From Zancudomyces culisetae HAW-14-8 (Eukaryota; Fungi; Kickxellomycota), in contig JBNJNM010000020.1 in assembly GCA_052426225.1 (NCBI GenBank), positions 21,848 to 85,847 of the forward strand: DNA of 64,000 nucleotides, in the 5' to 3' direction. Below, piece after piece: positions 1,793 to 64,000 of the stretch (its first letter is position 1; each line of letters begins with the position of its first letter). The position numbers were made by a program, and so were the translations under genes. The notes beneath the pieces were generated by a model. The model had not been told where the DNA came from. It saw nothing but the letters and a program-made list of their open reading frames with translations, and did no database searches.

Positions 1793-4700
1793 ATGGATAA
1801 CACAAAACAACCAACACAATGTTTTCAACAAACTTCCAGCAAGTATTCTGTCCACCGTATTTGTGCTTGCCCAAAACCCCCAGTTATCACTCTTGAACAA
1901 AAATATGTACAAAGCCCTCTCAAAAAGTAGAAACCGTTAGCGATTACATTGTTCAATATGTCTCATCGGATACAGGAGATAGTTCCCAGTGGAACCTGAG
2001 AGGCATATTCGATAAATACAAAAGAATAAGTATGAACGAAACCATCGGAATGCTGGTATTGAGAAAAATCAAGAGTTTGGGACTATGAAACCGCTCTAGA
2101 TATAGCATTTGAATACAGGTGGAGAACATGCTAGATATAATTATCAAGATGTATGTAGTGATTGATAGAAATACTTCTACGGTCGTGCACAAGGGCACTT
2201 TATTCATGGACAAAGATGAGTACTTAGATATTGATATTGGAAAATTGTTTTCAGAGGATAACGAATCGCAAATAAAGAAAATAGACATTAAAAACTTCCA
2301 ATTCTCTTTATATCCGACCATTATTCAAGATGGGGTGGAGGTCTCAGAGAAGTTAATATGGGCAATGTACACTATCTCTGGGGAAAGAGATATAGAAATG
2401 CTAATAGATATTTGCAACACCAAACTTGAGTTTCCTCCAGAAATATGTGGTTCTGTTGGTAGAGAGGTTAGATGTATTGATGACAAATTTTTAGTAAGTT
2501 GTATATTGATAGCCGCATGTGAAAGCTGTAAATTGAACAATCTTGATTTCTTAACAAGAATTTTGGATCTAGAAACAGGCAAAAATCTTCCTTTCAGGAG
2601 CTAAACTCGAGTGTGAAAGCCAAGGGCTCGGGCTATTGATGATTCATTTAAAGACTTTTGTTTATACATATGGGTTATGGGGTAAAAACAAATTTATTGA
2701 TTTACACTATATGTGCATATTATTCAATTGAATGGGATAGGAAAGAGTTTGTATCATATATCGAAGATAACTACTCTGGTAGTAAACACGCACAGATAAT
2801 TTTTGATTTAGCCGTATTTCACAGAAGAGAGAGTTTGCTCAAAAAATATATTTTCAAAGTGCAAACAAGTTCAGAGAATATAAAAAAAATAACAGAAATG
2901 GCGTGTAGATTTGGTAGTGTCGATCTCATAAGATTTCTTATAAACAACAGTGATAGACTGGAGGAAGATTTAGACGAAAACGCTCTGAAAATAGCTATAA
3001 AAAAAAATAACCACGAACTAATACAGGAAATTATCAGCAAATATCCAAATACTATGAGTTTCTCCTGTTTAGAGGACGCAGTGAATACCAGAGATGTCAA
3101 AATTTTAAAACTACTTATCGAAGCTGGAGCTGATTTAAAATCACCTGCGTTTAAGGGAATACTAATTGCAAGCGAAAATAAAGATACGGATATGCTACGA
3201 TTTTTACTGGAGCATGGTGCTTCCATTGACCTCAGAACCACACAAGGGGTTCAAGAGTTATGTAGAATAAAGAGTCGTGATATGATAGATTGTCTATTAG
3301 CAGTCTTAAATGAAGGTAGGATCGAACTCAACGAATCAGAAACACAAGGCAATGTTGGAATCAATCTGAAATTTAACAAAACAATACTATTTCTGATTGG
3401 AGCAGGTCAAGATTATAACCAAGATCATTCTGGTCGCCATGTTGAAGTTGAAGATGTTTTTGGACATCTGGATTTACACGAGAAGTTAATGGTGATTATG
3501 AACTCCAGGAGAACAGATATGCCAAATGTGAGTTCAATATACTTAGCAAACCTTGCTGCCCATTCTCATGACAAGAACATTACATCAATTTGTAATGGTA
3601 GATTGTTAGAAATTATTTGTTATATTGCTCAAAACAAACTGCAGAATACATTGATGGATTTCAAATACGATGGAGCTATCAATGTAAAGCACATACAGCA
3701 AAACATAATGTTGAATGATAGACATTATGAGTTGGCAAAATCAGAACTGGTCAATCGAAACTTTGAAATCTTAAAACTATTGATAGAGTATGGAGTTGAT
3801 ATTAATTCATACGATAGTTTGATCTTAAGGACAGCGTACAAAGCAGGTGATATTAGTTGGATTGATTATTTTATCAGTAAAGGTGCAAAACTAAACGGAG
3901 AATCAGATGGGTTTGAGGAGGCGTGTAAATCGGATAAAGTTGAAGTGTTGGAACATTGGATCAAGAATGGTGGTGTGGTGCCCAATAACCCAAAATATGA
4001 GTGTATTAACGTTGCGTGTATACTGGGTAACTTTGATATGATTAAATTGTTGGTAGAAAATGGAGTTGATTTAAGTGATCCAAAACGGAATGGAGTCAGA
4101 ATTGCATGTAGATTGGGTCTCAAGAGAACACTGAAATACCTCTTGGAACACAATGCTGTGATAAAGGGTGTTCGTCATCACCAATTGGAATATGCATGCA
4201 TGACTGAAAATATTGAGTCGGTAAAAATGATACTTGATCACCATGATGGTTTAGGAGTGTTAGAAAGAAATGATAACATATATACAAAGGAAGGAGAGGA
4301 ATCACAAGATATTTCTTATCTTGATAGTGAAAATACTGATAGATCTGAAGAATACGAAATTACTAAAATCTTACTTGAAAATGGTGAACCTATCCAGAAT
4401 AGTGATTTGTTGGATGCAGTAATGGCGGCGGCTAGAATTAATAATATTAAAATACTGAAAATACTTTTAATCTATAAGATTGATCTCAACGGTGATTCTA
4501 AAATAATGGACGATGCTGTACTAATGGGAAATGTTGAGGCAGTGAAGTTTTTATTGGAGAATGGGGTAACCATTAACGACAAGCCTCATCTTGTAGAAAT
4601 AGCATTCCGATCAAAAAACCAAGAAATAATAAGTGTCTTAATGCAGCACTGCACAAAATTTGAAGGGCATGATCATATTCGGATGAATTTTTTATTTCGT

Positions 4701-5180
4701 TTAATGCTAATGCGCTGAAGTTGCTTTTGGATTTTTTTCTTGAGATTGATGGTTATTAAATCTATTCTACACCGTTATCGGAAAATCCAAACTGGTAGAT
4801 GTTAAATTATTTTTGAAAGATGCCATCAAGCTTTCACTTACTGTAACCTCCCTTGTGTACCCTGTACGTGCAGAAGCAATAATCTTGAGATTTTGAAATT
4901 GTTATTTTTGAAGAGAGAATAAATAAATGAAAACAAAAGTGAAGCAGTTTAGGTATGTTCAAATAGTTTACTAGAAATATAGAAACTTTTATTTAAAAAA
5001 GATCTGAAGTTGTTAATAAAAAAGGATATTAGACTTAAGGAGGCATGTAATCATAACTAATTAGAAATGATCAAGTTTTGATAAAATATGGTTCTGTACA
5101 AATTTGCGTAGTGTGACGGTTTTAAAGTTGCGAGTGATCTAAATTATCACAAACTAATAAGTATTTGTCAAAATGTGTGA
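1793..5180 (+). pseudogene. F-box-like/ankyrin-repeat protein, copy 1 (frameshifted 5' part, intact 2658-4718 core, nonsense-disrupted 3' tail)
   Basis: ORF pieces 1743-1940, 2119-2604 and 2658-4718 are collinear with the intact paralog at 21900-25319. Ankyrin motifs include LKLLIEAGAD, LRFLLEHGAS and VKFLLENGV. The 5' breaks are homopolymer indels; the tail has in-frame stops (e.g. TGG>TAG near 4949). Confidence 0.85.
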
Positions 5181-15518: not shown

Positions 15519-17945
15519 ATGAATAACAACAATAACGACGATGTATTCAACAAACTTCCAGCAAGTATCTTGTCGACTATATTCGCATTTGCTCAAAACC
15601 CTCAACTATCACTCTTGAACAAAGATATGTACAAAGCCTCTCAAAAAGTGGAAACTATTGTTGAGTACATACTACAATATGTCTTGTCAAATAAAAAAGA
15701 CAGTCCCGAATCGAATTTAAAAAGTATATTCGATAAATACACCAGAATTAGTACGAATGAAACCGTTGGAATGCTAGTTCTGAGTAAAATCAAGAACTTG
15801 AACTATGGAATTGCTCTAGAATTGGCAGTCAAGTACAAGTGGAGAAACATACTGAATAAACTACTCAAAATGTATGTGGTGATTGATAGGAGTACTTCAA
15901 CGGTTGTACATAAGGGTAATTTATTCACAGAAGAAGGGGAGTACCTCGACATTGAATTTAGAAGTTTATTCTCAGGAAAAAACGAATTTCGAAGAAATTT
16001 GACAGACATCAAGATATCTGAATCTCTTTATATAAGGCCACTAGTAGCGACACTGAAGGAATTATGGCTACACTTACACTACTCAGATCGAGATTTTGAT
16101 AAAGAGAATGTGAAGGCCTTGATAGACCTTTGCTGTAGCAATATTGAGCTTCCTCAAGAATTATACAGTACTGTTATGAGGGAGGCTAAATTTATTGATA
16201 GCGTATTTATGGTATTTTGCATATTGGAGTGCACAGATAAAATCTGCAAATTGGGTAACCTTGAGCAGTTAGTACGAGTTTTGTATTTGAAAACCAATGC
16301 ATCTATTTCTTTTCGGAGACTGGAACGGATTAAAAATGAATTTTACATTGTCAGATTTTGGAGACTTGTTAATTTTATTGATGAATATGGATACACAACT
16401 AAAATGGATTTTTTGGTCTATATTGCATGCTCATACTTTTCGATTTATTGGGAAAAGGAAAAGCTGATAAAATACCTTGAGGATAATTACTCCAATAGCA
16501 CCTACAAACAGATACTATTTGATGCAGCTATACACCACAAAAAGGGAAGTTTAGTAAAAAGATATATGCTCGATGTGGAGTTGAACTCGGAAAATATCAG
16601 AAAAATAACAGAATTAGCATATAGACTGGATAGTATCGAACTTATTAGACTTTTGGTAGAGAACAATGATAAACTGAAAGGGGACCTAGATGAGAATGCA
16701 CTGAGAATCACTATAAAGAAAAAAAATTATCGATTGGCACAAAAAACTATCAAAAAGCATCCAAATGCGGTGAGTATTGCTATTTTACACGATCTAGTAC
16801 GCCTGGGTAATATTAACCTGTGCAAATCGGGTATCGAAGCTGGAGTAGATTTAAAATCACCAGAGTTCAAGGGAATTGTATTTGCTAGCAGAAATAGAGA
16901 TATGAATATGCTACAGTTGCTCTTGGAAAATGGTACCTCTGTTAACTCTAGCGCACAAGAGACCATTGAAGGGTTATGTTATGATTGTAATTATGAAATA
17001 TCGGAGCGACTACTTGAGTTTTCAGATATGTGGAAAAATAGAATTGAAACCAAAACTGTAGGAAGCAAGACCAAGGCTGTAAAGAGACCCAAATTCAACA
17101 AAACAATTCTATGCCTCGTTTGGGCATCTCTGCGTTATTGCGACCCCTATGCAAGTAGATATGTGGGATTCGAGGACTTTTTCGAACAATTGAATTTATA
17201 TTTGGATATAATGGTAGAGATAAACTCAAAAAGAAAAGATATCATTGGTTTTATTTTGTCGTATTTATCGGTATATTCCGCTCTCATAATACCAGAAGAT
17301 GATATAAGAGCCCGTTTTTATAAAGTTGTTGAAATTATAGGTTATATCATTGAAAATAATCCACAAAGCGTATTCAATGATACAGAATCCGATGAATCTA
17401 ATGAGTTGGAACACAAAAATGATATTGAAATGTTGAATGATAGACACTATGAGATAGTAAAATTAGAATTGGTGAACCGAAACTTTGAATTTCTTAAACT
17501 ATTGATAGAGTGTGGAATGGATGTCAATTCAGCTGATAGTCTAATTTTGAAAACAGCATACGAAGCAGGTGATATTGATTGGATAAATTACTTTATCAGT
17601 AAAGGTGCGAAATTTAGTGGAAAATCGGATGGGTTTGAGGAGGCTTGTAAATCAGATAAGGTTGATGTGTTGAAATACTGGATAAAGAATGGTGGTGTGG
17701 TACCAAAGATTCCAAAACGTTCCTGCATTAACAGAGCATGTTTATTGAGTAACTTTGGTATGGTTAAAGCATTGGTAGAGAATGGAGTTGATTTAAGTGA
17801 CCCAGAGCGTAATGGAGTCAGAGTCGCATTTAGGTTGGGTCTCAAGAGGATTCTGAAATATCTTTTGGATAACAATGCTGCGATAAAAGGCGTTCGTCAA
17901 AATCAGTTAGAAGTGCGTGTACTAGTAGGAATTTTTGGACGATAA
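15519..17945 (+). CDS. F-box-like/ankyrin-repeat protein, copy 2 (808 aa, C-terminally truncated relative to copy 3)
   Basis: N-terminal FNKLPASILSTIFAFAQNPQLSLLNK, ankyrin repeats, collinear with 21900-25319. Confidence 0.85.
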   Translation: MNNNNNDDVFNKLPASILSTIFAFAQNPQLSLLNKDMYKASQKVETIVEYILQYVLSNKKDSPESNLKSIFDKYTRISTNETVGMLVLSKIKNLNYGIALELAVKYKWRNILNKLLKMYVVIDRSTSTVVHKGNLFTEEGEYLDIEFRSLFSGKNEFRRNLTDIKISESLYIRPLVATLKELWLHLHYSDRDFDKENVKALIDLCCSNIELPQELYSTVMREAKFIDSVFMVFCILECTDKICKLGNLEQLVRVLYLKTNASISFRRLERIKNEFYIVRFWRLVNFIDEYGYTTKMDFLVYIACSYFSIYWEKEKLIKYLEDNYSNSTYKQILFDAAIHHKKGSLVKRYMLDVELNSENIRKITELAYRLDSIELIRLLVENNDKLKGDLDENALRITIKKKNYRLAQKTIKKHPNAVSIAILHDLVRLGNINLCKSGIEAGVDLKSPEFKGIVFASRNRDMNMLQLLLENGTSVNSSAQETIEGLCYDCNYEISERLLEFSDMWKNRIETKTVGSKTKAVKRPKFNKTILCLVWASLRYCDPYASRYVGFEDFFEQLNLYLDIMVEINSKRKDIIGFILSYLSVYSALIIPEDDIRARFYKVVEIIGYIIENNPQSVFNDTESDESNELEHKNDIEMLNDRHYEIVKLELVNRNFEFLKLLIECGMDVNSADSLILKTAYEAGDIDWINYFISKGAKFSGKSDGFEEACKSDKVDVLKYWIKNGGVVPKIPKRSCINRACLLSNFGMVKALVENGVDLSDPERNGVRVAFRLGLKRILKYLLDNNAAIKGVRQNQLEVRVLVGIFGR

Positions 17946-20075: not shown

Positions 20076-21134
20076 ATGAAATTAAACAACAAATCAATTT
20101 GTAAACATATCTTTACAGCACTATCGCTTGGGGGTATTGCTGCTGTACACGGTTCCTCAGTTGATAATGTAGACACAAATACTGGCATATCACAGAACGG
20201 AGTGAATAATCGTATTAACAATGCGAGAATCCTAAATGGGGAACCAGCAAAGAGAGAAGATTTTCCATATATTGGAAGAACAGGAATCTACGCGGGAAGT
20301 GCTTACACACAATGTAGTGTTTCACTATTATCTAACAAAATAGCAGTAACTGCAGCTAGTTGCTTCTTAGACAATCAAGGCAAATTAAAGCAAGATTCTA
20401 AGCAAATATATATTTCCATTGATATTGAAACAACAAAATACACTCGCGGTACTGCATATTCAGCACGTAAAGTATATTATCATCCTGAGTTTTCTCCCGA
20501 GTCATTAAAAAGTGACATAGCAATTATGGAATTGAATTCTCCAGTATTAAAAGATATGTTCACACCAGTAGCGATCTACAGTGGAAATATAACGGATGAT
20601 ATGGATTTGGTCACAGCGGGTTGGGGTCTCACTTCGACTGGGATATCAGGTTTACCAAATAATAAACTAAATACAGCTATACAATCACCCTCTTCTTCAA
20701 GTGTTTGTAAAAATTTCAACCCCAACTGGTCTGATAACAACAAAAACCTCATCTGTACACTAGTAAAGGATGGCAAAAGTTCGGCATATGAAGATGGAGG
20801 AAACCCCTTGGCGTACATGAATAATGGAGCTAATTTACTTGTTGGTGTTGCGAGTAACATAGGTAGATCTGAGAGTGGTGCTGATATTCGTCCAGAAAGT
20901 GCTGTGACGAATTATTATACCCATGTATACAGCTACATTGACTGGATTGTAAGTGTCACAGGACTTGAAAAGTCGTACTTATTAAATACAACCGCTCGGC
21001 CCTCTCCTGACTACTCAACGATTACCAATTTATCGGGATATTATGATTATGCACCTTCTGCCTCGACTATCTTGAAAAATACCGGATTCAAATTAGTGAT
21101 GCTCTTATCATTGGTATTGGTTTTACTATTTTAG
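20076..21134 (+). CDS. Secreted, probably GPI-anchored trypsin-fold serine protease homolog (catalytically inactive)
   Basis: Signal peptide; R|ILNG activation site; TAASC (His>Ser); DIAIMEL (Asp kept); YEDGGNPL in place of GDSGGPL (Ser>Gly); YTHVYSYIDWI; S/T/P linker and hydrophobic C-terminus. Confidence 0.9.
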   Translation: MKLNNKSICKHIFTALSLGGIAAVHGSSVDNVDTNTGISQNGVNNRINNARILNGEPAKREDFPYIGRTGIYAGSAYTQCSVSLLSNKIAVTAASCFLDNQGKLKQDSKQIYISIDIETTKYTRGTAYSARKVYYHPEFSPESLKSDIAIMELNSPVLKDMFTPVAIYSGNITDDMDLVTAGWGLTSTGISGLPNNKLNTAIQSPSSSSVCKNFNPNWSDNNKNLICTLVKDGKSSAYEDGGNPLAYMNNGANLLVGVASNIGRSESGADIRPESAVTNYYTHVYSYIDWIVSVTGLEKSYLLNTTARPSPDYSTITNLSGYYDYAPSASTILKNTGFKLVMLLSLVLVLLF

Positions 21135-21899: not shown

Positions 21900-24800
21900 A
21901 TGGATAACACAAACAACCAACACAATGTTTTCAACAAACTTCCAGCAAGTATTCTGTCCACCGTATTTGTGCTTGCCCAAAACCCCCAGTTATCACTCTT
22001 GAACAAAAACATGCACTATGCCTCGCAGCAGGTAGACACTGTTTGTAAGTACATACTTCAATATATTTTATCCATTACAAAACATAGTTTTAATTCGGAG
22101 TTACGAAGTATATTCGAGAAATACACCAGAATAAACATGAATGAAATCGTTGGAATACTTGTATTTAGAAAAATCAAGAGTTTGGACTATGAAACCGCTC
22201 TAGATATAGCATTCGAATACAGATGGACAAACATACTAAACAAATTGCTCAAAATGTATGTTGTAATCGATAGAAATACTTCAGCGGTTGTGCACAAGGG
22301 CACATTATTTATGAACGAGGGCGAGCACCTGGATATTGATATTAGCGGTTTATTTTCAGAAAGAAATGAATCACGAAGTGAGGAAAATGATATCGATATA
22401 TCTGAATCACTTTATGTAAGACCATTATTCAGGGTGCGAGGGAACTCAATGGATTTGGAGTATCAAATTTTAGATATTTCTGAAGAAAGAGATGTCAAAA
22501 TGTTATTAGATATCTGCAACACCAGATTTGAGTTTTTTCCTGAAATATGTGGTTCCTTTGAAAGGGATATTATTTGTGTAGGTAAAGAATTTTTATTATA
22601 CTGTTTATTCACTGCTGGAGAAGTAATAGTTGACTTGGACAACCTTGAACTATTAAAACAGCTTTTGGATGTGAAAATCAACACAAAATTCTCTTTTCAG
22701 GATTTACAATCAATTACAAACTCCTACGGTGATTCCTATGATACGGAGTTTAATAATTTTGTTATGGATTATGGAAATGCAGATAAAATGGATTTGTTAG
22801 TTTATATGATATGTACATTTCATTCTATTCACTGGAACGAGAAAGAGTTGATAAAATTCCTTAAGGATAGCTACACTGGTAGTAGATACTCACAGATATT
22901 TTTCGATGCAGCGGTTTATAATAGATATGACAGTTTGGTACAAGAATATGTTTTCAAAGTCGAACTAAACCCGGGAAATATTAGAAAACTAACGGAAATG
23001 GCATACTGTAGAGGCGTTGTCGGTATTGTTAAGTTGCTTTTAATAAATAGCGATAAGCTGAAGGGAGATCTGGATGAAAATGCTCTAAAAACAGCGATAA
23101 AAACCAAGAACTACGAATTGGTACAAGAAATCATCAGTAAATATCCAAATACAATGAGTGTTTCTTGTTTAGGGAAAGCGATAGAGATCGGGGATACTAG
23201 AATTATAAAACAACTTATCGAAGGTGGAGTGAATTTAAAATCACTAGAGTATAAGGAAGTAAGAATCACATACGGATATAGCTATTTATATAATCTACGG
23301 TTATGGGGTGGGTCTAATGATTTGGATGAATCTGAGGTTCAACATATTATTGGAAAGCTATGCAGTATTAAAAATTATGACATAGCGAAACGGCTATTAG
23401 AGATCTCAAATTTAAGCGACGAAAAAACTAAATCCAAAACTTCAGAAAGCCTGGCCAAGACTGGGACAAGGCTGAGGTTTAGTAAAACAATTCTATGTCT
23501 TATTAAAGCCTGTCAGGATTTCAGATGCCAGTTTGTTCACAATGGTGTCGATTTTGATATTTCTTTTAAATACCTGGATTTATTCGAAAACGTAATAGCA
23601 ATTGTGAATTCAAGGAGGAAAAAAACGTTCGAGATTATTTACTCATATTTCCAAAAACTTTTTTCTTATAATCATATGGTTGAAGAAAGAAAATCTTGTT
23701 ATGAAGAATTACTCGAAATCATTAGATATATTATTGAGAATAATCTGCAAAATCCATTCGAATATACTGAACATGACGAAATTAACGAATTTGGATACAA
23801 AGTCAACATAGAGGTCTTGAATGATAGGCATTACGAGCTAGCAAAATCAGAGCTGGTGAATCGAAACTTTGAAATCTTAAAACTATTGATAGAGTATGGA
23901 GTTGATATTAATACGAAGAATAGTTTGATCTTAAGGACAGCGTGCAAAGCAGGTGATATTAGTTGGATTGATTATTTTATCGGTAAAGGTGCAAAACTAA
24001 ACGGAGAATCAGATGGGTTTGAGGAGGCGTGTAAATCGGATAAAGTTGAAGTGTTGGAACATTGGATCAAGAATGGTGGTGTGGTGCCCAATAACCCAAA
24101 ATATGAGTGTATTAACGTTGCGTGTATACTGGGTAACTTTGATATGATTAAATGGTTGGTAGAAAATGGAGTTGATTTGAGTAACCCAGAACTGAATGGG
24201 GTCAGGGTTGCATGTAGATTGGGTCTCAAGAGAACACTGAAATATCTCTTGGATAATAATGCTGAGGCGGGGAATATTTGTAGATACCAATTAGATTATG
24301 CTCGTTTAACTGAGGATATTGAGATGATAAAAATGATTCTAGAGTATTATGTTGGTTTGGGGGTGTTAGAGAAAAAAGACAACACAAATACAAAGGAAGG
24401 AGAATTACAACATTATTCACCTTTGAGCCATAATAATAGTGGTTGTTTTGATGAATACAAGATTACTAAAATCTTACTTGAAAAGGGTATGTCCATGGAT
24501 AATAGCGATTTGTTATATGGGATAAAGGCAGCAATTACTGTATCTAATATTGAATTATTGAATCTACTGTTAACGTATAAGATCAATCCCAATCATCATT
24601 CTAAAATAATGGAATTCGCCGTACAATTAGAAAACGTTGAGGCAGTAAAACTACTTTTGGAGAGTGGAATCAGTGTAGAGGGTAACACTAGTATTCTAGA
24701 TATAGCACTTGAATCAAAAAATGCAGAGATGTTCAGACTATTATTGGAAAATGGTGCAAAAGTGGAAAGTAAATCACATAAATTGTATTATTATTTTGAT

Positions 24801-25319
24801 TTAGATGACATTGAAACTATTCAGTTAATGTTGAATTATTGCCCTGAGATTGGTGGATTCTCTCGCTTACTTGAATCTGCTATCGAGAAAAACAAACTAG
24901 AGGCAGCTAAATTGCTATTGAAAGATACGACTACGCTTGAAAATAACGAATTGGATTTCGTATATTACGCCTGTAGAAATAATAATCTAGAATTTCTGAA
25001 GCTGTTATTTGAAAATGGGGTAAAGATAAAAAGGGGAAGTGGTAGTGGAGTGGTTTGGGCGTGTACAAATAACAATTTGGAAATGCTAAAACTCTTGTTG
25101 GAAAGAAATCCGAATTTGGTACTAAAAAAGGAATACGGGTTAAAGGAGGCTATCAAACATAAAAATGTCGAAATTATCAAACTGTTGATTAAACACGGTA
25201 TTGACACAAGTAGGCATATTGAATTGATCATAAAAGTTGCGAACGAACTAGATGATCAAGAATTGGTTGAGTTTTGCCAATATACAGTTGGGGGATTTAA
25301 AAAAGCTAAACAGTCATAA
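21900..25319 (+). CDS. F-box-like/ankyrin-repeat protein, copy 3 (intact, 1139 aa)
   Basis: Single-exon ORF; N-terminal LPASILSTVF..NPQLSLLNK F-box-like motif; many ankyrin repeats (e.g. ACRNNNLEFLKLLFENG, AIKHKNVEIIKLLIKHG). Confidence 0.92.
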   Translation: MDNTNNQHNVFNKLPASILSTVFVLAQNPQLSLLNKNMHYASQQVDTVCKYILQYILSITKHSFNSELRSIFEKYTRINMNEIVGILVFRKIKSLDYETALDIAFEYRWTNILNKLLKMYVVIDRNTSAVVHKGTLFMNEGEHLDIDISGLFSERNESRSEENDIDISESLYVRPLFRVRGNSMDLEYQILDISEERDVKMLLDICNTRFEFFPEICGSFERDIICVGKEFLLYCLFTAGEVIVDLDNLELLKQLLDVKINTKFSFQDLQSITNSYGDSYDTEFNNFVMDYGNADKMDLLVYMICTFHSIHWNEKELIKFLKDSYTGSRYSQIFFDAAVYNRYDSLVQEYVFKVELNPGNIRKLTEMAYCRGVVGIVKLLLINSDKLKGDLDENALKTAIKTKNYELVQEIISKYPNTMSVSCLGKAIEIGDTRIIKQLIEGGVNLKSLEYKEVRITYGYSYLYNLRLWGGSNDLDESEVQHIIGKLCSIKNYDIAKRLLEISNLSDEKTKSKTSESLAKTGTRLRFSKTILCLIKACQDFRCQFVHNGVDFDISFKYLDLFENVIAIVNSRRKKTFEIIYSYFQKLFSYNHMVEERKSCYEELLEIIRYIIENNLQNPFEYTEHDEINEFGYKVNIEVLNDRHYELAKSELVNRNFEILKLLIEYGVDINTKNSLILRTACKAGDISWIDYFIGKGAKLNGESDGFEEACKSDKVEVLEHWIKNGGVVPNNPKYECINVACILGNFDMIKWLVENGVDLSNPELNGVRVACRLGLKRTLKYLLDNNAEAGNICRYQLDYARLTEDIEMIKMILEYYVGLGVLEKKDNTNTKEGELQHYSPLSHNNSGCFDEYKITKILLEKGMSMDNSDLLYGIKAAITVSNIELLNLLLTYKINPNHHSKIMEFAVQLENVEAVKLLLESGISVEGNTSILDIALESKNAEMFRLLLENGAKVESKSHKLYYYFDLDDIETIQLMLNYCPEIGGFSRLLESAIEKNKLEAAKLLLKDTTTLENNELDFVYYACRNNNLEFLKLLFENGVKIKRGSGSGVVWACTNNNLEMLKLLLERNPNLVLKKEYGLKEAIKHKNVEIIKLLIKHGIDTSRHIELIIKVANELDDQELVEFCQYTVGGFKKAKQS

Positions 25320-42277: not shown

Positions 42278-42923
42278 TTGTACGATACTAACATTGAGCC
42301 TTGGCGCTTTAAAACGCAAACCAAAAGAGAAACAATAAGTATTTAAATAGAATACAATTTTTGGTTTCTTGGTTGGGTTGTATCCTTTATTTTTGGAAAA
42401 GTGGAGACAACAAATAAAGCGGGGTAAAGGTTTGAAATGCCAGAAATTCAATCCGGGAAAAAATAGTCAGAAAGGTGATAAGGTCACTAATCTCGTAAAA
42501 TGGTAAAGTGTACCAAAGATACGAATTTACACATGGTTCCTATAATAAATGGTGTAGAGTAGATCATGTTTAAGCCATGGACGTAATATGACACGCTGTG
42601 TTACTACTGAGTAGTAAAAGTCGCATATACCCACTACTCAGCAGTCATATTTCGGCTTAAATGTAAAACCAGGCGCTCAAGCTTATGTACTCGAGTATAA
42701 ATCAGTTTATTGATTATTTAAATACCTAACCTAAAACAAACATCAGATACAAAATAAATCAATTATGTGACATTCAGATAATGCTAAAACATGTAAAATG
42801 CCAATGTGATGATAATAGTCATAGTAATAGTCATAGTAATGGTCATAGTGTGTTGATGATACAGCGTTTCAAAAATCACACCCTCTCCATTCCCTTCTTC
42901 TTTTTGACTCATTCATTCTTTTA

Positions 42924-43286
42924 CTAAAGCCAGTAGTACAAGATTCTCGCTGAGCTGTAGTACTTGTATGTTGACCCCAATCTCTTTTGTAAGTGTGCCT
43001 GTTCTTCACTAAACATCTGGTCCAAGTACTGGACAACCTCTGCTGCCTTTTCTGATTTGCCTGTATCTGGTGACTGCATTTCCTCCTTCAACTTTGTCAT
43101 GATTGCACGATCACTGGCTGCTTCTCCGTTCCCAACCATAATTACTGGCACCATGTTTGAGTTTCCAGTAACTGGTGTGTCTCTTGGCAATCCGTTGTTG
43201 TCTTGGACATTGATTGGTGCCGCTGGCATAGAAAGCACCCCTGTAACCAAACCGGCGGTCATAAATGTAGCTGCTGAGATTCTCAT
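42924..43286 (-). CDS. Secreted prepro-peptide precursor, copy A (120 aa; KR-released C-terminal 18-mer)
   Basis: MRISAATFMTAGLVTGVLS signal peptide, ~80-aa pro-region, LQKR|LGSTYKYYSSARILYYWL*; TATAAATA ~130 bp upstream. Confidence 0.85.
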   Translation of the reverse strand: MRISAATFMTAGLVTGVLSMPAAPINVQDNNGLPRDTPVTGNSNMVPVIMVGNGEAASDRAIMTKLKEEMQSPDTGKSEKAAEVVQYLDQMFSEEQAHLQKRLGSTYKYYSSARILYYWL

Positions 43287-43429
43287 TTTTGTGGTTTTTA
43301 CTTGAGTGTAGATGGTGTTTTGTATTGTATTGTTTTGTTTTGTTTGTATCAAACGGTTTTGTATCAATTGATATTGTGTGTAGATGATAAAATAAAGGAT
43401 GTAGTGAAGGGTATTTATACCTGTTTTGG

Positions 43430-43563
43430 ATGTATGTGTATATTTGTGTATGTGTATGACTATGTGTATATTTGTGTATATTTGTGTATATTTGTGTATA
43501 TTTGTGTATATTTGTGTATGCGTATATTTGTGTATGCGTATATTTGTGTATGCGTATATTTGT
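43430..43563. repeat. Compound (ATATTTGTGT / ATATTTGTGTATGCGT)n repeat next to the TATA box of copy A
   Basis: Direct reading; the partner at ~58022-58140 has a different unit arrangement. Confidence 0.9.
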
Positions 43564-43790
43564 AATGCTATTTAATCTACATTTACTTTGCTTCTTAAAA
43601 CTCAGTTCATATCTTAAACCATGTACTTTTTAAAAGATCATTGTACCTGTTCCTTGAAATTATCCACTAATGTTTTATAAAGGCATCTTTTAGACAAACT
43701 GTTTGTGAGTAATGAAATATAACACATTGTATTCTCGATCCTTGTAACATTTTAACTTCCAAAGGTCTTTATAAGCATTGTTTCATTTTG

Positions 43791-43874
43791 CACTTTCCAC
43801 TTTCCACTTTCCACTTTCCACTTTCCACTTTCCACTTTCCACTTTCCACTTTCCACTTTCCACTTTCCATTTTC
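43791..43874. repeat. (CACTTTC)n heptamer array, 12 units
   Basis: 11 perfect units plus one CATTTTC. Confidence 0.95.
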
Positions 43875-46800
43875 CTCAGTGTAATTTATCTACTACTATG
43901 TCCATTTATATTCTTACCAAATCTTAGCTTTACCAATGACGTTTACTGGTTGAACTGCAGCAATCAAATGTGGTGGTTTTAAAGCCAGATAAAGTTTTGG
44001 TATTTAAAAAGGATCTTTGAAATTCTAAACCATCTTCAATTTCCATCACTTTTATAATGGGTCTTTTAATTTTGTGCAAAATACTAAGAGCTTTCTGTTT
44101 ACACGTTTGGATAATTAAGGTTGGTAAATGGATGTGTATTTGGACTAAATAGCCATAACGAATACATTTATGGATTACAAAACACTTAGTATACAATTTT
44201 TGATCTGTTTCTTCCTTCAAAACACGTACTCGAGTGTTTCACCAAAGAATATCAAAAGTAGATCAGTGAATAATGGTTGGTAATTAATAACTAATGGTCA
44301 ATGAGCTAGGATATGCACTAACAACCCAACAATATCTAACTCTTCTGTTTTTTTCAGTAACAAACTGATCCAAAAAATATACTTTTTCAAACAACCACCG
44401 TATCTACAACCAGCATTTCAAAATGTATTCTGTGACTTTTTCTGCATTTTTACATGGTTCAAATCAACCAAGTACCAGAATACACACCACATTGAACGTT
44501 GTTTAGTAAACAACGATATTGGCTGAGGTAGTAGTTGATATACCTCATTTTTAATTTCTATCGTCACTAAAAAGTAGCAAACAACAGAAAATGAACAAAA
44601 AAAGTACAAATGGACAAAACAAGATCCAATGCGCTACAACTACATACACTACTATTGAGAAATAGTCAAACATGAAATGGTATAGCATTAATGCCCAGAC
44701 TGTACTTTTATCGAGTGTTCTATTTACATGTTTGTATTTGAACATTATGCCATTTATTGGCTATCAAAACTGACAATATACTAGCAGTTAGTCATTATTA
44801 ATGCTATTATTATCACTCACAAACTCACAAACTCACAAACTCATAAAAATAGATACCACACAAATCTCCGAAACGCAGAGTGTGTCTGTAGTAATAGCGA
44901 AAAATACTGAATTGTAAGAGTAAAAAACTCAGGATTTATTACGACTGTGTAACATTTTGTACGCTTGTGGTATAAAAAAGTCAAACAAAGCAAGGTATGG
45001 TATAAGAGTGGAAATGAGATGGGAATAGATAAAGGCAAATAGTATCATATCACCCAACACCAAGTTTACAGAGTAGAAGCGAGTGAGGTGGAATTGAATG
45101 ATATTTCTATTAATGTGTCTGTCTAGAATGTCGTACAGTGGTGAATAAATTCACATATCGGATATCGGATATCGGATATTTGTAGAGCTACTAATTGACC
45201 AATACGTATATCACTCCTTTTTTTGACCATTCAATTATTTGTTTTTGTTATTATTTTAGAAATTCCCGACTCTCAATAGGAACGGTTGGGCATTAGCTAT
45301 TTTAAATTGATGTTGTTATTATTTTCAATGCAATTTTAGCACTTTCAGCCATGTGGAGTAATCTGGCATAATTTTTTTAGATTTCATAAACAAGCCAATC
45401 TAAACACAGAATTTTTACTATTTGCGTAAATTTGATCAAGAAAATTAATGAACATAATGTAGTTTGGGGCTCTTCGCAGTTTTATGTGAAGCTTTGAAAA
45501 ATAGACATCCGTCTTTTATTTTTGAAAATGATACTCAGGTTATAGCATTATTCTCAATCCTTATACATTTAGATGAATAGATTATCTGGATGCTTATTAT
45601 TTAATGGGTGATATGTCGCTTTCGATCACGTCCATATATTTTAATACAGGACTATGAATTGATAATCCTTGGGCAGACTGTTATTGTTATCTGGGTTCAG
45701 TTAAAGTGGGCTTATAGCTTGCCTGTTTTTTTCAATCAATTGATGTAAAAAATGAGATTATTATGGATTTAATGTGTTTACTTGTAAGTAAAATTTTATG
45801 ATACAGGAAACGATAATCACAAATGGGATAAAGGTACCAATTCAAGCTGACGATTTCCGAAAGAGTATTTCTAGTAACATGAAAGTAAGATGATGGATAA
45901 AAAAAAAGTTATTACTCTTGCTTATTGTTGTTATAGCGGCAAATAAGCAAATGAGCTATACGTGCTCCATGGTGAAAAAAAAATCAGTGTGAAACTAGAA
46001 GTGTAGTTTTTATTTGTTTAGTGTCCAAAGCCAAAGCAAATGTTGGTAACTAGAGACGTCTTTTGTGGAGATATCAGTACAAAAGCCATGTAACTATGAA
46101 AAGTTTTGGGAGGAGGAGGTAAAATAGCAAGCTCTGCGCTTATAACAGCAGTTATTAAAGTGATACAACACTTTTGGTATTTTTATCACTAATCTTTTTT
46201 TTGGGGGAGGCGGTGGTGGTGGTAATGATGAAATTCATGAATGGGTAGAGAGGAGGGAGAGGGGTTAGTTCAGCGAAACAAAAAGCTAGATGTATTATCA
46301 TTTTGTTTGATTTTGGGTATTTTATTACCAAATTAAATTATTTTTTGAACGAAAAAAGATAAATTGGGTAGAACCTGAGTGTAAATAATAATCGATGCGA
46401 TCTGTATGGTGAAAAATAGCAGTATTGTATTGGTGTGCTAATTTTCATTATTTTGTGTAGGTTTGAGTGTGGAAAGTTGTGAGAAGTTATAGAAAAGCTG
46501 AATATACTCATAAAATGTATGTATAATCCACAGATAAAAGAGTGTCTGGTGGGGATATTAGGGTTATTGCCAATTGCAAGTTGTTTCCTCAAATCTCATC
46601 ACATGGTGAATATGTATTTTGCTTATTTATAAATAAATTGAATAAGTTTGGACCTATTCACTTATTAGGCTGTTATTGGTGGAATAGTTATAAATTGCTA
46701 ATTGAAAGAAATAAAGTTTAAGTATGGCAATAGAATCATATGAGGATTTGTAATAAGTGCAGCTAAAGCAGATATTATGGCGCTATTAAATGCATGTCGA

Positions 46801-56126: not shown

Positions 56127-57689
56127 TTTATGTTGGTATTTTATTGATTTTGGTCTGAATCTGAGTGTAAAAGAGAGTTTTGGTTTGATATTCGAGATTA
56201 AAAAGTGGGCACCAAAATCAAAGGACAAAATTTTTCAAATCACAAATCGAGTTTAAAACTATTGGTTGAGAAATAAGCTAAAAACGATGAAAGAAGGGAT
56301 CAAGAGGCTACTTAATCAGAAGGATATCATGGGTATAGATGTAGCCAAGAAAAGGAGTGATATACGTATTGGTCAATTAGTAGCTCTACAAATATTCGAT
56401 ATCCGATATGTGAATTTATTCACCACTGTACGACATTCTAGACAGACACATTAATAGAAATATCATTCAATTACACCTCACTCGCTTCTACTCTGTAAAC
56501 TTGGTGTTGGGTGATATGATACTATTTGCCTTTATCTATTCCCATCTCATTTCCACTCTTATACCATACCTTGCTTTGTTTGACTTTTTTATATCACAAG
56601 CGTACAAAATGTTACACAGTCGTAATAAATCCTGAGTTTTTTACTCTTACAATTCAGTATTTTTCGCTATTACTACAGACACACTCTGCGTTTCGGAGAT
56701 TTGTGTGGTATCTATTTTTATGAGTTTGTGAGTTTGTGAGTTTGTGAGTGATAATAATAGCATTAATAATGACTAACTGCTAGTATATTGTCAGTTGTGA
56801 TAGCCAATAAATGGCGTAATGTTCAAATACAAACATGTAAATAGAACACTCGATAAAAGTACAGTCTGGGCATTAATGCTATACCATTTCATGTTTGACT
56901 ATTTCTCAATAGTAGTGTATGTAGTTGTAACACATTGGATTTTGTTTTGTCCATTTGTACTTTTTTTGTTCATTTTCTGTTGTTTGCTACTTTTTAGTGA
57001 CGATAGAAATTAAAAATGAGGTATATCAACTACTACCTCAGCCAATATCGTTGTTTACTAAACAACGTTCAATGTGGTGTGTATTCTGGTACTTGGTTGA
57101 TTTGAACCATGTAAAAATGCAGAAAAAGTCACAGATTACATTTTGAAATGCTGGTTGTAGATACGGTGGTTGTTTGAAAAAGTATATTTTTTGGATCAGT
57201 TTGTTACTGAAAAAAACAGAAGAGTTAGATATTGTTGGGTTGTTAGTGCATATCCTAGCTCATTGACCATTAGTTATTAATTACCAACCATTATTCACTG
57301 ATCTACTTTTGATATTCTTTGGTGAAACACTCGAGTACGTGTTTTGAAGGAAGAAACAGATCAAAAATTGTATACTAAGTGTTTTGTAATCCATAAATGT
57401 ATTCGTTATGGCTATTTAGTCCAAATACACATCCATTTACCAACCTTAATTATCCAAACATGTAAACAGAAAGCTCTTAGTATTTTGCACAAAATTAAAA
57501 GACCCATTATAAAAGTGATGGAAATTGAAGATGGTTTAGAATTTCAAAGATCCTTTTTAAATACCAAAACTTTATCTGGCTTTAAAACCACCACATTTGA
57601 TTGCTGCAGTTCAACCAGTAAACGTCATTGGTAAAGCTAAGATTTGGTAAGAATATAAATGGACATAGTAGTAGATAAATTACACTGAG

Positions 57690-57794
57690 GAAAATGGAAA
57701 GTGGAAAATGGAAAGTGGAAAGTGGAAAGTGGAAAGTGGAAAGTGGAAAGTGGAAAGTGGAAAGTGGAAAGTGGAAAGTGGAAAGTGGAAAGTG
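57690..57794. repeat. (GAAAGTG)n heptamer array, 15 units
   Basis: GAAAATG, GAAAGTG, GAAAATG, then 12x GAAAGTG; three units longer than the left arm. Confidence 0.95.
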
Positions 57795-58284
57795 CAAAAT
57801 GAAACAATGCTTATAAAGACCTTTGGAAGTTAAAATGTTACAAGGATCGAGAATACAATGTGTTATATTTCATTACTCACAAACAGTTTGTCTAAAAGAT
57901 GCCTTTATAAAACATTAGTGGATAATTTCAAGGAACAGGTACAATGATCTTTTAAAAAGTACATGGTTTAAGATATGAACTGAGTTTTAAGAAGCAAAGT
58001 AAATGTAGATTAAATAGCATTACAAATATACGCATACACAAATATACACATACACAAATATACACATACACAAATATACACATACACAAATATACACAAA
58101 TATACACATAGTCATACACATATACAAATATATACATACATCCAAAACAGATATAAATACCCTTCACTACATCCTTTATTTTATTATCTACACACAATAT
58201 CAATTGATACAAAACCGTTTGATACAAACAAAACAAAACAATACAATACAAAACACCATCTACACTCAAGTAAAAACCACAAAA

Positions 58285-58647
58285 ATGAGAATCTCAGCAG
58301 CTACATTTATGACCGTCGGATTGGTTACAGGGGTGCTTTCTATGCCAGCGGCACCAATCAATGTCCAAGACAACAACGGATTGCCAAGAGACACACCAGT
58401 TACTGGAAACTCAAACATGGTGCCAGTAATTATGGTTGGGAACGGAGAAGCAGCCAGTGATCGTGCAATCATGACAAAGTTGAAGGAGGAAATGCAGTCA
58501 CCAGATACAGGCAAATCAGAAAAGGCAGCAGAGGTTGTCCAGTACTTGGACCAGATGTTTAGTGAAGAACAGGCACACTTACAAAAGAGATTGGGGTCAA
58601 CATACAAGTACTACAGCTCAGCGAGAATCTTGTACTACTGGCTTTAG
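58285..58647 (+). CDS. Secreted prepro-peptide precursor, copy B (120 aa; mature peptide 58591-58644)
   Basis: Same protein as copy A except A11V in the signal peptide; TATAAATA at ~58152. Confidence 0.85.
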   Translation: MRISAATFMTVGLVTGVLSMPAAPINVQDNNGLPRDTPVTGNSNMVPVIMVGNGEAASDRAIMTKLKEEMQSPDTGKSEKAAEVVQYLDQMFSEEQAHLQKRLGSTYKYYSSARILYYWL

Positions 58648-58917
58648 TAAAAGAATGAATGAGTCAAAAAGAAGAAGGAATGGAGAGGGTGTGATTTTTG
58701 AAACGCTGTATCATCAACACACTATGACCATTACTATAACTATTACTATGACTATACCATCACATTGGCATTTTACATGTTTTAGCATTATCTGAATGTC
58801 ACATAATTGATTTATTTTGTATCTGATGTTTGTTTTAGGTTAGGTATTTAAATAATCAATAAACTGATTTATACTCGAGTACATAAGCTTGAGCGCCTGG
58901 TTTTACATTTAAGCCGA

Positions 58918-58984
58918 AATATGACTGCTGAGTAGTGGGTATATGCGACTTTTACTACTCAGTAGTAACACAGCGTGTCATATT
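58918..58984 (+). other. Stem-loop downstream of the peptide gene (mirror copy 42585-42651, minus strand)
   Basis: ACTGCTGAGTAGTGGG (58924-58939) pairs with TTTACTACTCAGTAGT (58951-58966): 16 bp with 4 G-U pairs. An outer AATATGAC/GTCATATT pairing is also possible. Confidence 0.6.
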
Positions 58985-60573
58985 ACGTCCATGGCTTAAA
59001 CATGATCTACTCTACACCATTTATTATAGGAACCATGTGTAAATTCGTAAATTTTTGTACACCTGATTATTTTGTGTCGTATGTACACCTCAACTCTATC
59101 AATGTTTTTTATTACCAACCTTCTCACTTGTTGCTTTTCTGTTACTCTCTGTTTAGTTCTTAGTTCAGGGTACTCTAAAAATGACTTTCATGTCTCTCTG
59201 GATCAATATATAACATTATAACCTCTATTATGATACTACTCTATTTTTAGTATTACATGAACGTAACTTTTTTTTATAACACTACCTTTTTCCTTGGCGA
59301 CTTCATTCTGAGCCGGAGTTATCAGGATACTATTGCAGAGTTTGCAAATCAGCTATTTTTTCACCATTATTTTTATGCCACAGCTCGGTTAGTGATAAAA
59401 ATGTAAGCCTTTTGCACAGTAAAACATATACTTAGTTAATATACAACTCCACAAACACTCACTTCACCTGTAGTTCATATCCTTTTCAGTTTCTTATCCA
59501 TATTATCGCAAAATGGTCAGTAAAAAAATTAGTTTTTCTTAGTTTCGCTAATCTAGACTGCGTACAGTAGCTATTGGCTAGAAGCAAGTTTATGACCAAC
59601 CACATACCAGTAGAGGCAAGGATATAATTAAAAGGAACTACGTTAGAATACTTCACCATTCACCTTCAAGGGTCTGATAATATTATGTGGATAACTTTGT
59701 ATTTAGAACTACAATACTGATATACCTCATTTTTCATCCAATATAAGCGTATCCTATGGCTAGCATGGCGAATTGTTATATACTTTAAAATCTAGACACT
59801 TTAGGGGTAAATCCTAAATAAAAAAAGCGAGCTAGATCCCATATTAAACTCAATTTCTCAACCAAGCACCCAATTGCTGCTTTTCTGGTTCTACCACCTG
59901 TGGTTCCATTACTTTTTTTTTTGGATATTTATGCACCAAAGCAGTTATCAAAAAATGGGGGTATACTTGAACTAAAGAGCCAGTAGGAGCCCTTAAAAGA
60001 AAAGTGCCAGATATATTGCAGCTTAAATAATGATATTCATAGTACTATACCATAGTAAAAAGAGGTTATAACTAAAATTAATGTTAGACCCAGAACAAAG
60101 CTGGAATATATTATTGCATTTAGGTTATGTCTTGCTTTCATGAGTGAATTTGGATCTACAAAATGGTCCCAGCTTCCAAAGTTATGTTTTATGCCTAATA
60201 ACATATTTATTTTAAAAAAAAGTAGCAAGCGACTTGTTCAAACAGTCTAGAAAATTTAGCATTAACGTTTGAGTATTAAATGTTGATCAAAGTTACTATT
60301 TGAGGCATTCCTAAGTGGAAAATCTGACATAGAAAAATAGGCGATATAAGCTTTAGTAAAATTGTTTTTTTAGTTGCTATAAAAGCTCTATAAAAGAACT
60401 TTAGTCAAAAAAATCAATAAACGCCAGGAGTCAAAGAACAATATTAAGACTTATTTTTTTGTATTACCAGTTTTTCTAAGTGCCAGATTTTGAGTCAAAT
60501 ACATAATACTACTCAGATATAGAGGATTGCAGAACAAATATCAACCATAAGGGGGGGTAAAAGAAAAGTAAAT

Positions 60574-63500
60574 ATGTTGAAAAATATATCATTATTGGTT
60601 TCTTTCACTCTACTCTCGGCGCGGAGTGTCTAACCATTGATAATACAAATAAAAGTCACAATGATCTTAGCGAAAACCGAGATTTTAGTCCAAAGAGTCT
60701 AAAAAATACATGGCAAGATGAGAAAAGGAACTCTATTGAACCAGTATCCGTTGACACCTCAATATTAAATTCAGGAAAGGTAGATATCAGTCACAATGGC
60801 AACTACACAAAATCGGAGGAGCCATGATAATATATACTAATGACAAAATATTTGAGCCTACTTATGATGAGGCTATGCGAAAAAGTGCCGTTTCAGATAG
60901 AATAAACTGTGAATCGAGCAAATTAAATAACAATAAACACCTATCAAAAATATACTGTTTGGATGACACAACAGAACCTACAAATAATATTCCACTTAAC
61001 TATCTCTACCAAAGACTATGTAATAGAGCAACAGAGCAAGACAATACACAGCTCAAACAAATGTACTGTGATGTGCGAAAGCAGAATAACTACGGACCGC
61101 TTAGCGGAGCCAAGCTAGATGGTTTGATTGAAGAATATTTAAAGCTCGTTGAGTATACCGAAGACCCTGCAGACATGGCTGCAAATAAGCCTGTTAGAGA
61201 TGCTCTGAATAGCATAACATCCGCTGAAAACAGTGGTTCGAAAAATCAACACTCAGAAAAGATAAGTGACGCAGTAGAACACAGCAAAAATCAGAAAATG
61301 ATCAACAAGAAAAGTACAATAATATTCTTGTCGAAGCTTTGAGTGCAGCGGAAGAGAAAAACCCATTAGAGCAACTAGGTTCTCTTTGGACACAAGACAC
61401 GGATTCAGAGCTATCACCAAATTCCCTAACACATGGAAATGACCAGGTGGCAAAGATAGTTATGGTTAAGTGTGCCCTAGCACTAAGAAGTCAAAATAAG
61501 GATGCAAAATCAAAGTTCTGTAATAGTGCAAACATTGCATCTGCAAAAGCAATGAATCTAAACCGAATTCTTTCAGCTTTGTGTGGTCGTGCAAAAAATT
61601 TTTTAGACTATTATAGACTTTCTATATACTGTAACGAAATTATACAGGTATCTGATACCACCCCAGATATAGTCATTTCTACAGGCAATATCAGACGAAA
61701 ATGACCGAGTTAATAGACGCAGGGTTGCTTTAAGGACTATGGTACGTGGTTTCGATAAAAAGGCTAGATATTTGAACCCGTATCTCAGACTGTGTCTGGA
61801 GGCATCATACGTACATGATATCGAAGAATGCAAAGGTACTGCAGGGGAATTGTTCCAAGACCAAAAAAAACATGCATGTTGTGCATATTTTTAGAGTGCT
61901 TTGTGGATTCGGCCTAAAAAATCCTCCAGCAATTATGCTATAAAGCCAATACTGCAAACCGTTGGAAAAAGTAAAGGTTGAACCCCCACCTTTGGTAAAA
62001 ATATATGGGGAACTATGTAAACAGCAAAGAGAGAGAACAACAGCAAGGCTACTGCAACATATTGTAGAGAAATTGTCGGACAACCTTTTAGAATTATTCC
62101 ACGTAGAGAGTTAGAAGCAATCTTATGTAGAGAGGCATTTATGTTAGGAGCCCAGTCATTCACAACACATTTCTGCAGTGTAGCGGATAGGGATATGTTA
62201 GATTCATCAGATAAAAAAATGGTTGATACATATGAGACCAAATGCAAAGATGCAAAGAAGAGTAAAAATGCTTCAGGAATTGAAAAGTACTGCAAACCCG
62301 ACGATGTGAATGTAGGTTCAATAACGATTCCACAAATAAAAGATGTTTACAGAGTACACTGTAGCTTGGCTAGAATGAGCGGAGATAGTGCAGATATTAG
62401 AAAATACTGTCTTCTTGGAAAGGGTGTTGATTACACAAAACTTGATCTTATAATAACGGATGTTTACAAAAGGTTATGTCAACATGCAACAAGAAAAGCC
62501 ATAATAAAAAAGCACAATATTGCAGAGATCTAACACGTAAGACAGAGTTACCAATCTCGAAAGATGAGGTGATTCGTGCATTGTGTGTAGAGGCAAAGCT
62601 TAGAAATGACCGGAAAAAAATGCGTTTGTACTGCCCGATATTCAATAGTGCAGATAGTCAAAACGTGTACACAAAAATGTGTTTTGAGGCCATGTTAAGT
62701 GGTGACAACAAAAACAAAATGCTGTACTGTCATACCTCAAGCAATCCTAAGCCTCCCCTAGAGAGTGTTGAAAGGTTTATGTGCTCTTTGGCAAAAGCGT
62801 CAAAATCCCAAGCCGATATAGATAATTACTGCCCGAAATTTACAAACAATTCCTCTAAGCTGCTTGATATCAAAAAAATATACAGGCAACTCTGTGCGGA
62901 AGCCAAAAAGAGCAGAAACAAGGCTGAAATTGAGTTCTTCTGTGCTTCTCTAGAAAATACCGAAATCAAGGTTCCTCCACTAAAATATTTTTATAAAATA
63001 CAATGTCAAAATTCCAAACTCTGCTTTGATGTAAAAGGCGTTAGCCTGTACTGCGTTGATAAAAACTCTGTGAATCAAAACGACGTGTACTTTAGAAGAT
63101 GTCGTGCGGCCAAAATTTCTGGAAACAAAGTCGATATAAAGAGATATTGTACAGGATTGGCGGCTGGAAAACCATCCACTTCCCAAATTAACCGAATACT
63201 GTGTTCGATTGCTCGATCACGAAACAACGTTAAAAACATTATAAAGTATTGTAAAAACGTAGTTACAGTTATTGTTGTCGATAAGGTCTACTCAAACCTA
63301 TGCCTGAAGGCCAAGAGAGAGAAAAATCGTCGCGATATCAAAAAGTATTGCAAAGAGCCTTCAGATATTGGTCCAAACCACCCTCCATTGTGTGAAATAA
63401 CCAAAATGCTGTGTATTGAGGCCAGAATCGCAAAGGATTATCCAAAAATTAAAAAGTATTGCAGGGACTATAAACCAAGCGAAAAGTTCTACTATGATAC

Positions 63501-64000
63501 TTTATGCAGAAAAGCCAAAATCGAAAGAAACCCATACAACATAAACAGGTATTGTCCTCGACCTCCAAACCCACCACTGCCTAGTTATGATACAAACAAA
63601 ATTCTATGTCATTTGGGCAAACTACAGAAGGATAAGGTAAAAATAGCCATGTTCTGCAGACCAGATAAAAATGAAGGTTTGGGTTGCTCAATTAAAAAGA
63701 TATATAAATATCTGTGCAAGTACGCACAAATAACCAAAAACCCTAGCACAATCAAACTATATTGTCGAGATATTAGCCATAAAGATGACAAGCTTCCATC
63801 AATAGATGAAATATACAAAATACTCTGTGTTATAGCAGCCATAAAAAATGATGTAGCAGCTAAAAGAAAATACTGCAGACCATTCATACCACCTACACAT
63901 ATAAACAAATACAAACAGCTTTGTGAAAAAGCAAAAAAGGAAAAAAACAAAGCGGACATTGAGAAGTATTGTCCTTCAGATATTTCCAAATATCCTCCAT
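60574..64000 (+). CDS. Large putatively secreted Cys/Tyr/Lys-rich protein with tandem C-x15-C repeats; several frameshifts in 60.6-62.5 kb, open from ~62521 past the window end
   Basis: Signal-like MLKNISLLVSFTL; ORF fragments 60824, 61339 and 62141, plus a stop-free ~490-codon frame 62521-64000 that the ORF track omits, all carry (L)C-x2-A-x4-(N/D)-x3-I-x2-(Y/F)C. Confidence 0.75.

Follow-up and report, generated by a model that had tools for sequence, protein, structure and literature searches.

Introduction

In the precursors of frog-skin antimicrobial peptides and of plectasin-type defensins, a signal peptide is followed by an acidic spacer that ends in Lys-Arg (KR) and then by a short basic peptide at the C-terminus, and acidic parts acting as neutralising carriers are seen in many pro-peptide precursors. 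In Candida albicans, Ece1 yields several peptides through cleavage at many KR sites, and its active product is an amphipathic helix of hydrophobic character. The classes of Kex2-processed proteins have been set out (PMC8528282), and the same source gives the preferences of the protease as Arg at P1, Lys or Arg at P2, an aliphatic residue at P4 and a residue other than Asp at P3. What defines a KEP is a series of tandemly repeated peptides with Kex2 sites at their borders (Umemura 2020, PMC7329392), and DUF3328, the domain of the UstYa oxidases, has been reported only in Ascomycota and Basidiomycota (PMC7329392). K2PP effectors, finally, carry a Kex2 motif in the first half of the protein, with a disordered pro-domain before it and a folded domain after it (PMC8528282).

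Here we compare with these systems a small gene of the mosquito-gut fungus Zancudomyces culisetae HAW-14-8, a strain of which a PacBio-HiFi assembly has been published, with mRNA sequencing made alongside it (PMC12611240). The gene lies in a window (by which we mean the whole stretch of DNA analysed) of 64,000 nucleotides on contig 20, and it appears to encode a real, species-restricted and probably secreted small protein of this fungus. Its transcription, secretion, cleavage and function are all matters that we infer from the sequence.

Results and Discussion

The window holds two copies of the gene, of which the one on the forward strand (copy B) is laid out as follows.

58285 to 58647, forward strand: copy B, a 120-codon single-exon open reading frame (ORF calling and translation)
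58285 to 58341, forward strand: residues 1–19, a signal-peptide-like N-terminus (hydropathy)
58342 to 58584, forward strand: residues 20–100, an acidic pro-part of net charge −6 (segment composition)
58585 to 58590, forward strand: K101-R102 (AAG AGA), the sole dibasic site (motif scan)
58591 to 58644, forward strand: residues 103–120, the C-terminal 18-mer (composition and copy alignment)

The frame runs without interruption from the ATG at 58285 to a TAG stop at 58645–58647, which is followed immediately by TAA. The N-terminus comprises one Arg and then 16 uncharged hydrophobic or small residues, with V-L-S before Met20; residues 3–19 are uncharged and hydrophobic (9-residue Kyte-Doolittle means of 1.0–1.8), with V at −3 and S at −1, and a predicted signal peptide of 19 residues fits both this hydropathy and the V-x-S cut site before Met20. 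The 81 residues of the pro-part include 2 aromatics, and the one dibasic site of the mature chain stands in the context L99-Q100-K101-R102, followed by L103. The tail of 18 residues has 5 Tyr, 1 Trp and a net charge of +2, with the motifs Tyr-Lys-Tyr-Tyr and Tyr-Tyr-Trp; it holds five of the six Tyr residues of the protein, an enrichment with a Fisher p of 6e-4. Cys, N-x-S/T sequons and internal repeats were looked for over all 120 residues and none was found, VTG being the one tripeptide that recurs. The anatomy is thus as described, and the compositional split is non-random. An earlier note on this DNA had made out a 19-residue signal-like start, an aromatic-poor pro-region, a single KR and a terminal 18-mer, all of which we found again on re-reading the ORF; segment analysis returned the composition that it had given for the 18-mer (5 Tyr, 1 Trp, charge +2, no Cys), and its statement that the 18-mer is identical in the two window copies holds, the last 202 nt of the copies, 18-mer included, matching exactly.

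The genome has one kexin gene (on contig C15, with Peptidase_S8 at 4e-46 and P_proprotein at 3e-19), and L99-Q100-K101-R102 agrees with every one of the Kex2 preferences listed in PMC8528282. With the Class 1 Kex2-processed precursors, namely the KEPs and yeast α-factor, the protein has in common a pro-region and a Lys-Arg with an aliphatic P4 residue, to which its predicted ER signal may be added, and cleavage would release a short linear peptide bearing Tyr. It differs from the KEPs, however, in having one site, one peptide, no repeat and no homology to any KEP type, and from yeast α-factor in that the tandem copies with KR and spacer dipeptides and the glycosylated pro-region of the latter are absent. 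The dikaritins (ustiloxin, asperipin-2a, phomopsin) also have a Tyr-rich core behind KR, Tyr being the residue that is cross-linked in them, but they need a nearby UstYa/DUF3328 oxidase gene and repeated cores, whereas the core here is single and the window holds no such cluster. UstYa/DUF3328 (PF11807) found no match in the whole genome, window included, in agreement with its restriction to Ascomycota and Basidiomycota (PMC7329392). K2PP effectors such as SnTox3 have a signal peptide and a Kex2 motif, one of each, and a single cut parts their pro-part from a C-terminal product, a scheme that our protein with its predicted signal peptide would share; like it they are orphan and lineage-specific, and they are secreted. 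Here, in contrast, the motif lies as late as residues 99–102 of 120, and cleavage would leave an 18-mer.

The nearest analogy in layout is offered by the frog-skin and plectasin precursors, whose order of parts is the same. There is no sequence relation to them, and the tail is neither amphipathic-helical nor Cys-stabilised, so that the usual membrane-active and defensin modes do not apply. Ece1, the candidalysin precursor, is likewise the source of a Kex2-dependent secreted peptide in a host-associated fungus, but here there is one site, and the tail is polar-aromatic and non-amphipathic: its helical hydrophobic moment of 0.16 lies below the shuffle mean and is reached or exceeded by 64% of shuffles (mean hydrophobicity 0.18), which argues against a lytic amphipathic helix of the candidalysin or frog-peptide kind. 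The earlier note had read the gene as a Kex2-type precursor, and part of that reading stands, namely the layout of signal, acidic pro-part, LQKR and basic C-terminal peptide, the Kex2-type site and the presence of kexin. Each analogue that it named fails in a defining feature: the likeness to α-factor for want of tandem copies and of any MF_alpha match, that to the KEPs and dikaritins for want of repeated peptides and of UstYa/DUF3328 in the genome, and that to candidalysin in the non-amphipathic tail. Judged by its sequence features, the protein would work like a Class 1 Kex2-processed precursor, but outside the KEP, α-factor, dikaritin, Ece1 and K2PP groups.

The comparison with α-factor bears on one specific alternative, in which the 18-mer would act as a pheromone, diffusible and sensed by a GPCR, in mating or development. 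The general order of signal, pro-region, KR and aromatic peptide is that of such a precursor, and an MF_alpha cluster ranked first in a language-model look-alike search of the ESM atlas. [quoted passage not shown] MF_alpha and MF_alpha_N gave no match even at E = 10, there is one copy of the peptide without spacer dipeptides or glycosylation sequon, and STE2 (PF02116) and STE3 (PF02076) found no match in the genome in a profile search whose control genomes, being prokaryotic, do not validate these negatives. With no repeats, no MF_alpha signature and no STE2 or STE3 found, a pheromone of this kind is disfavoured, and we consider it very improbable.

A Pfam scan of the window bears out the further claim of the note that no tailoring enzyme or receptor gene lies there. 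It returned ankyrin-repeat proteins, a trypsin, G6PD, RRM/R3H proteins, a WD40 protein, an enoyl-reductase-like dehydrogenase, an LRR protein and a Ribosomal_L4-family protein. The large ankyrin-repeat protein is present as three diverged paralogues (2658–4718, 15519–17945 and 21900–25319) with a DNA identity of 67–96% depending on the segment, and the trypsin-family gene (20076–21134) lies between the second and the third of these. Downstream of copy B, at 60574–64000, abutting ORFs of 120–170 codons in different frames encode Cys-containing repeats with no Pfam match, and taken together they have the appearance of a single repeat-protein gene, spliced or frameshifted.

Whether the ORF is a gene at all was judged from its length, its surroundings, its codon usage and its variation. 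ATG-initiated ORFs of at least 120 residues number 31 in the window, where shuffled 64-kb windows lead one to expect 0.75. Around copy B the following elements were recognised.

58022 to 58140, forward strand: a 16-nt A/C-rich unit repeated some 7 times in tandem, ending immediately before the TATA box
58152 to 58159, forward strand: a TATAAATA box (TATA box), 133 nt upstream of the ATG
58858 to 58863, forward strand: AATAAA, a possible polyadenylation signal 211 nt past the stop (pattern only)

The leader 3′ of the TATAAATA box measures 135 nt, contains no ATG and has 3.7% G, against 17.9% G in the window, and, as far as their sequence goes, promoter and leader resemble what one would expect of a real gene. 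The 16-nt array differs by 14 nt in length between the two arms of the inverted repeat described below. A second upstream tandem array, (GGAAAGT) x 16, occupies 57689–57798, and an imperfect palindrome, CTGAGTAGT ... ACTACTCAG, is found at 58918–58984, about 280 nt past the stop and beyond the AATAAA, in both arms. The codon usage of the gene is closer to that of GAPDH, enolase and EF-Tu than is that of 11 of the 12 other window genes, in a test that is weakly informative in that antisense frames score alike. An antisense frame of 113 codons (58266–58607, reverse strand) is open as well; it starts with TTG, has no good ATG and is probably no more than a by-product of the sense ORF.

The gene is found in an inverted repeat, the arms of which, of 2.6 kb each and 93–99% identical by segment, surround 11.2 kb of DNA, with the gene copies facing outward.

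42515 to 45172, strand not assigned: left inverted-repeat arm, which carries copy A (self-alignment of the window)
42924 to 43286, reverse strand: copy A, with 2 nt differences from copy B (V11A and one synonymous)
56392 to 59054, strand not assigned: right inverted-repeat arm, which carries copy B (self-alignment of the window)

The 11.2 kb between the arms holds a Pin4-like RRM/R3H gene and the Ribosomal_L4-family gene. In all, the genome has four copies of the gene in two inverted-repeat loci, two in the window (contig 20) and two on contig 21, where the same layout recurs at a spacing of 15.4 kb; the two loci are ~98–99% identical, and a genome search with the gene at E <= 10 retrieved its own four copies and nothing else. 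This locus is not alone in being doubled: several normally single-copy genes (GAPDH, EF-Tu-like and an EF1A-like domain) also occur twice, each time on different contigs and with identical scores, the contig pairs concerned, that of this locus included, being C6/C10, C6/C12, C19/C21 and C20/C21. Such doubling may reflect large segments duplicated in the genome or haplotigs left unmerged in the assembly.

Variation was compared over five copies from two strains, that is, the four of HAW-14-8 and the one of Z. culisetae COL-18-3. Seven sites of the CDS vary; five fall in the 57-nt signal region and two in the pro-part, and the last 202 nt are uniform. Variation is concentrated in the signal-peptide codons, where 5 sites in 57 nt compare with a level of ~1% in the flanks. 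T7A and V11A are among the changes there, and the pattern is compatible with that of a coding gene whose predicted signal peptide evolves fast. The flanks have 16 substitution columns in 1,400 nt on the 5′ side and 2 in ~370 nt on the 3′ side; beyond the signal region the CDS has 2 substitutions in 306 nt, which is not below the flanks (~1%), and purifying selection is not demonstrated, the substitution density of the CDS being no lower than theirs. The ORF is intact and free of indels in all five copies, the six internal indels falling without exception in the flanks, which is not significant by itself, the number expected in the CDS being ~1.2. Residues 55–120 are invariant as one block, within which the 18-mer is not singled out.

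These observations weigh on the possibility that the ORF is non-functional, either as the passenger of a recently duplicated, gene-converted repeat or as an ORF that arose de novo in recent times and has no selected product. A species-restricted sequence with no homologue among 1.8 billion representatives, a CDS no more conserved than its flanks and an open antisense frame with similar codon scores are what such an ORF would show. ORFs of this length are nevertheless rare by chance, the TATA box and the G-poor, ATG-free leader are in place, every indel avoids the CDS, and a signal-like N-terminus followed by an ordered arrangement of charge and aromatics is not expected of noise. We hold a non-functional ORF to be improbable, and the gene is very probably real.

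Its known relatives are limited to copies that are 97–99% identical within Z. culisetae. The sole database relative is AX774_g3895 of strain COL-18-3, a "hypothetical protein" from an ab initio AUGUSTUS model, which has 97% identity and differs in 4 residues. The COL-18-3 contig, assembled from short reads, shares 98.9% DNA identity with the window. It aligns to both arms and breaks off within the right one, 340 nt past the gene and inside the repeat. A word-indexed protein search matched this copy alone, and an exhaustive HMMER search of 1.8 billion representatives gave nothing credible beyond it; neither Pfam (at E <= 0.01 and then at E <= 10), nor the PDB sequences, nor a JGI metagenome scan contained a match to the protein, and an exact-sequence look-up of three protein variants in public assemblies returned no record. 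Three weak HMMER extras are long repeat proteins, none of which extends to KR or the tail; the two that were aligned cover residues 9–88, signal peptide included, and we set all three aside as chance matches inflated by repeats. That the family could not be recognised, as stated in the earlier note, is therefore borne out by the word-indexed, HMMER and Pfam searches.

Searches of the genome by DNA pattern were equally negative. A pattern of KR with two Tyr-Tyr dyads after it matched 13 times in the whole genome and 8 times in the control, the matches outside the four gene copies being apparently due to chance and situated in trinucleotide-repeat runs. A pattern for Tyr-Gly-Tyr-Gly-Tyr matched 221 times, less often than in the control (306), and most of the matches were hexamer microsatellites. 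Near-identical TATGGYTACGGTTAC (Tyr-Gly-Tyr-Gly-Tyr) matches occur at C6:20533, C8:37501, C8:54565, C9:61330, C10:16181 and C11:31631, 16–61 kb from the starts of their contigs, and the first 10 kb of 20 contigs contained no ORF with a signal and a Tyr-rich stretch.

How would the protein be processed? As we picture it, residues 1–19 would take the chain into the ER and then be removed, and in the late Golgi the single kexin of the fungus would cut after L-Q-K-R(102). The cell would then export two products, an acidic fragment of ~81–83 residues and the 18-mer, free, basic and aromatic and with its ends unmodified; the role of the acidic part would have been to carry and neutralise the sticky basic tail. 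Taken alone, the single KR is weak evidence for a precursor. In composition-matched shuffles of the mature chain, KR turns up in 22% of cases, KR leaving a tail of 8–40 residues in 7.6% and L-x-K-R in 1.7%. The kexin-cut precursor is favoured because the site fits the Kex2 preference and because the charge and aromatic split falls exactly at KR, and we put the release of the 18-mer from the pre-pro-protein by kexin at somewhat short of an even chance. Homologues displaying a conserved site or tail were not found in the word-indexed, HMMER or metagenome searches. Structure prediction is of limited help, the single-sequence AlphaFold2 model being unreliable (pLDDT 41, and below 55 in the pro-part); it has helices at 56–70, 77–103 and 113–119, with K101-R102 at the end of the second of these, a position that might hinder cleavage.

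The same data can be read in terms of a protein that is secreted and stays whole, that is, a largely helical secreted or wall protein of ~101 residues in which KR would be incidental and the Tyr-rich tail would anchor or cross-link within the entire chain. The frequency of KR in shuffles fits this, as do the position of KR in or at the end of the low-confidence helix 77–103 and an invariant unit that spans residues 55–120 and not the 18-mer alone. It is countered by the full L-x-K-R, which is rarer by chance and equals the preferred Kex2 site, by a charge and aromatic split exactly at KR, and by the presence of a secretory-pathway kexin that would meet the site unless it is buried. We judge the uncleaved protein unlikely, though well within consideration. 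Decidedly less probable is a third arrangement, in which KR is cleaved, the acidic fragment of ~81 residues is the functional part and the 18-mer is discarded as a C-terminal pro-peptide with a sorting, folding or inhibitory task. Two of the predicted helices lie in the N-terminal fragment, and 46 of its residues before KR belong to the invariant block, but the fragment is poor in aromatics, devoid of Cys and modelled at low pLDDT, and the unusual, non-random composition sits in the tail.

Returning to release of the 18-mer by kexin, our preferred guess for the tail is a surface- or matrix-associated peptide, possibly oxidisable by tyrosinase, at the hyphal wall or holdfast. Such a role is preferred over a pore-forming toxin or a pheromone in view of a non-amphipathic tail that has Tyr beside Lys and Ser and no Cys; it is reached by the elimination of alternatives together with the Tyr, Lys and Ser content, and it is from composition that an adhesive or matrix function would be read. 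The 18-mer might instead be a diffusible signal or an antimicrobial. At least 8 tyrosinase-family genes are present in the 27-Mb genome, on contigs C8, C10, C11 and C23, and none turned up on contigs 20 and 21, where the gene described here resides. One member of the family (C23:487293–487889) carries internal stops.

Conclusions

The Harpellales, the group to which Z. culisetae belongs, are widespread as symbionts in the guts of mosquito and black-fly larvae, and to our knowledge almost nothing is known of the molecules that they secrete into the host gut or with which they attach. Fungal genomes contain many orphan small secreted proteins with a plausible convertase site; the gene described here is plausibly a new orphan in this broad class, and as such it is a lead and not a discovery. 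The most far-reaching reading, to which we give a slender chance, is that the 18-mer is released by kexin and, after oxidation or cross-linking by tyrosinase, acts as a building block of the wet adhesive or wall matrix that holds this fungus to the hindgut cuticle of mosquito larvae, or else that it is the first peptide signal described in Zoopagomycota. If the glue reading is true, it would be a fungal parallel to the Tyr/Lys-based glues of mussels. Under this far-reaching reading the four gene-converted copies would serve dosage. A processed, species-specific peptide from four gene copies would, if true, be a candidate for attachment, for competition with gut bacteria or for signalling.
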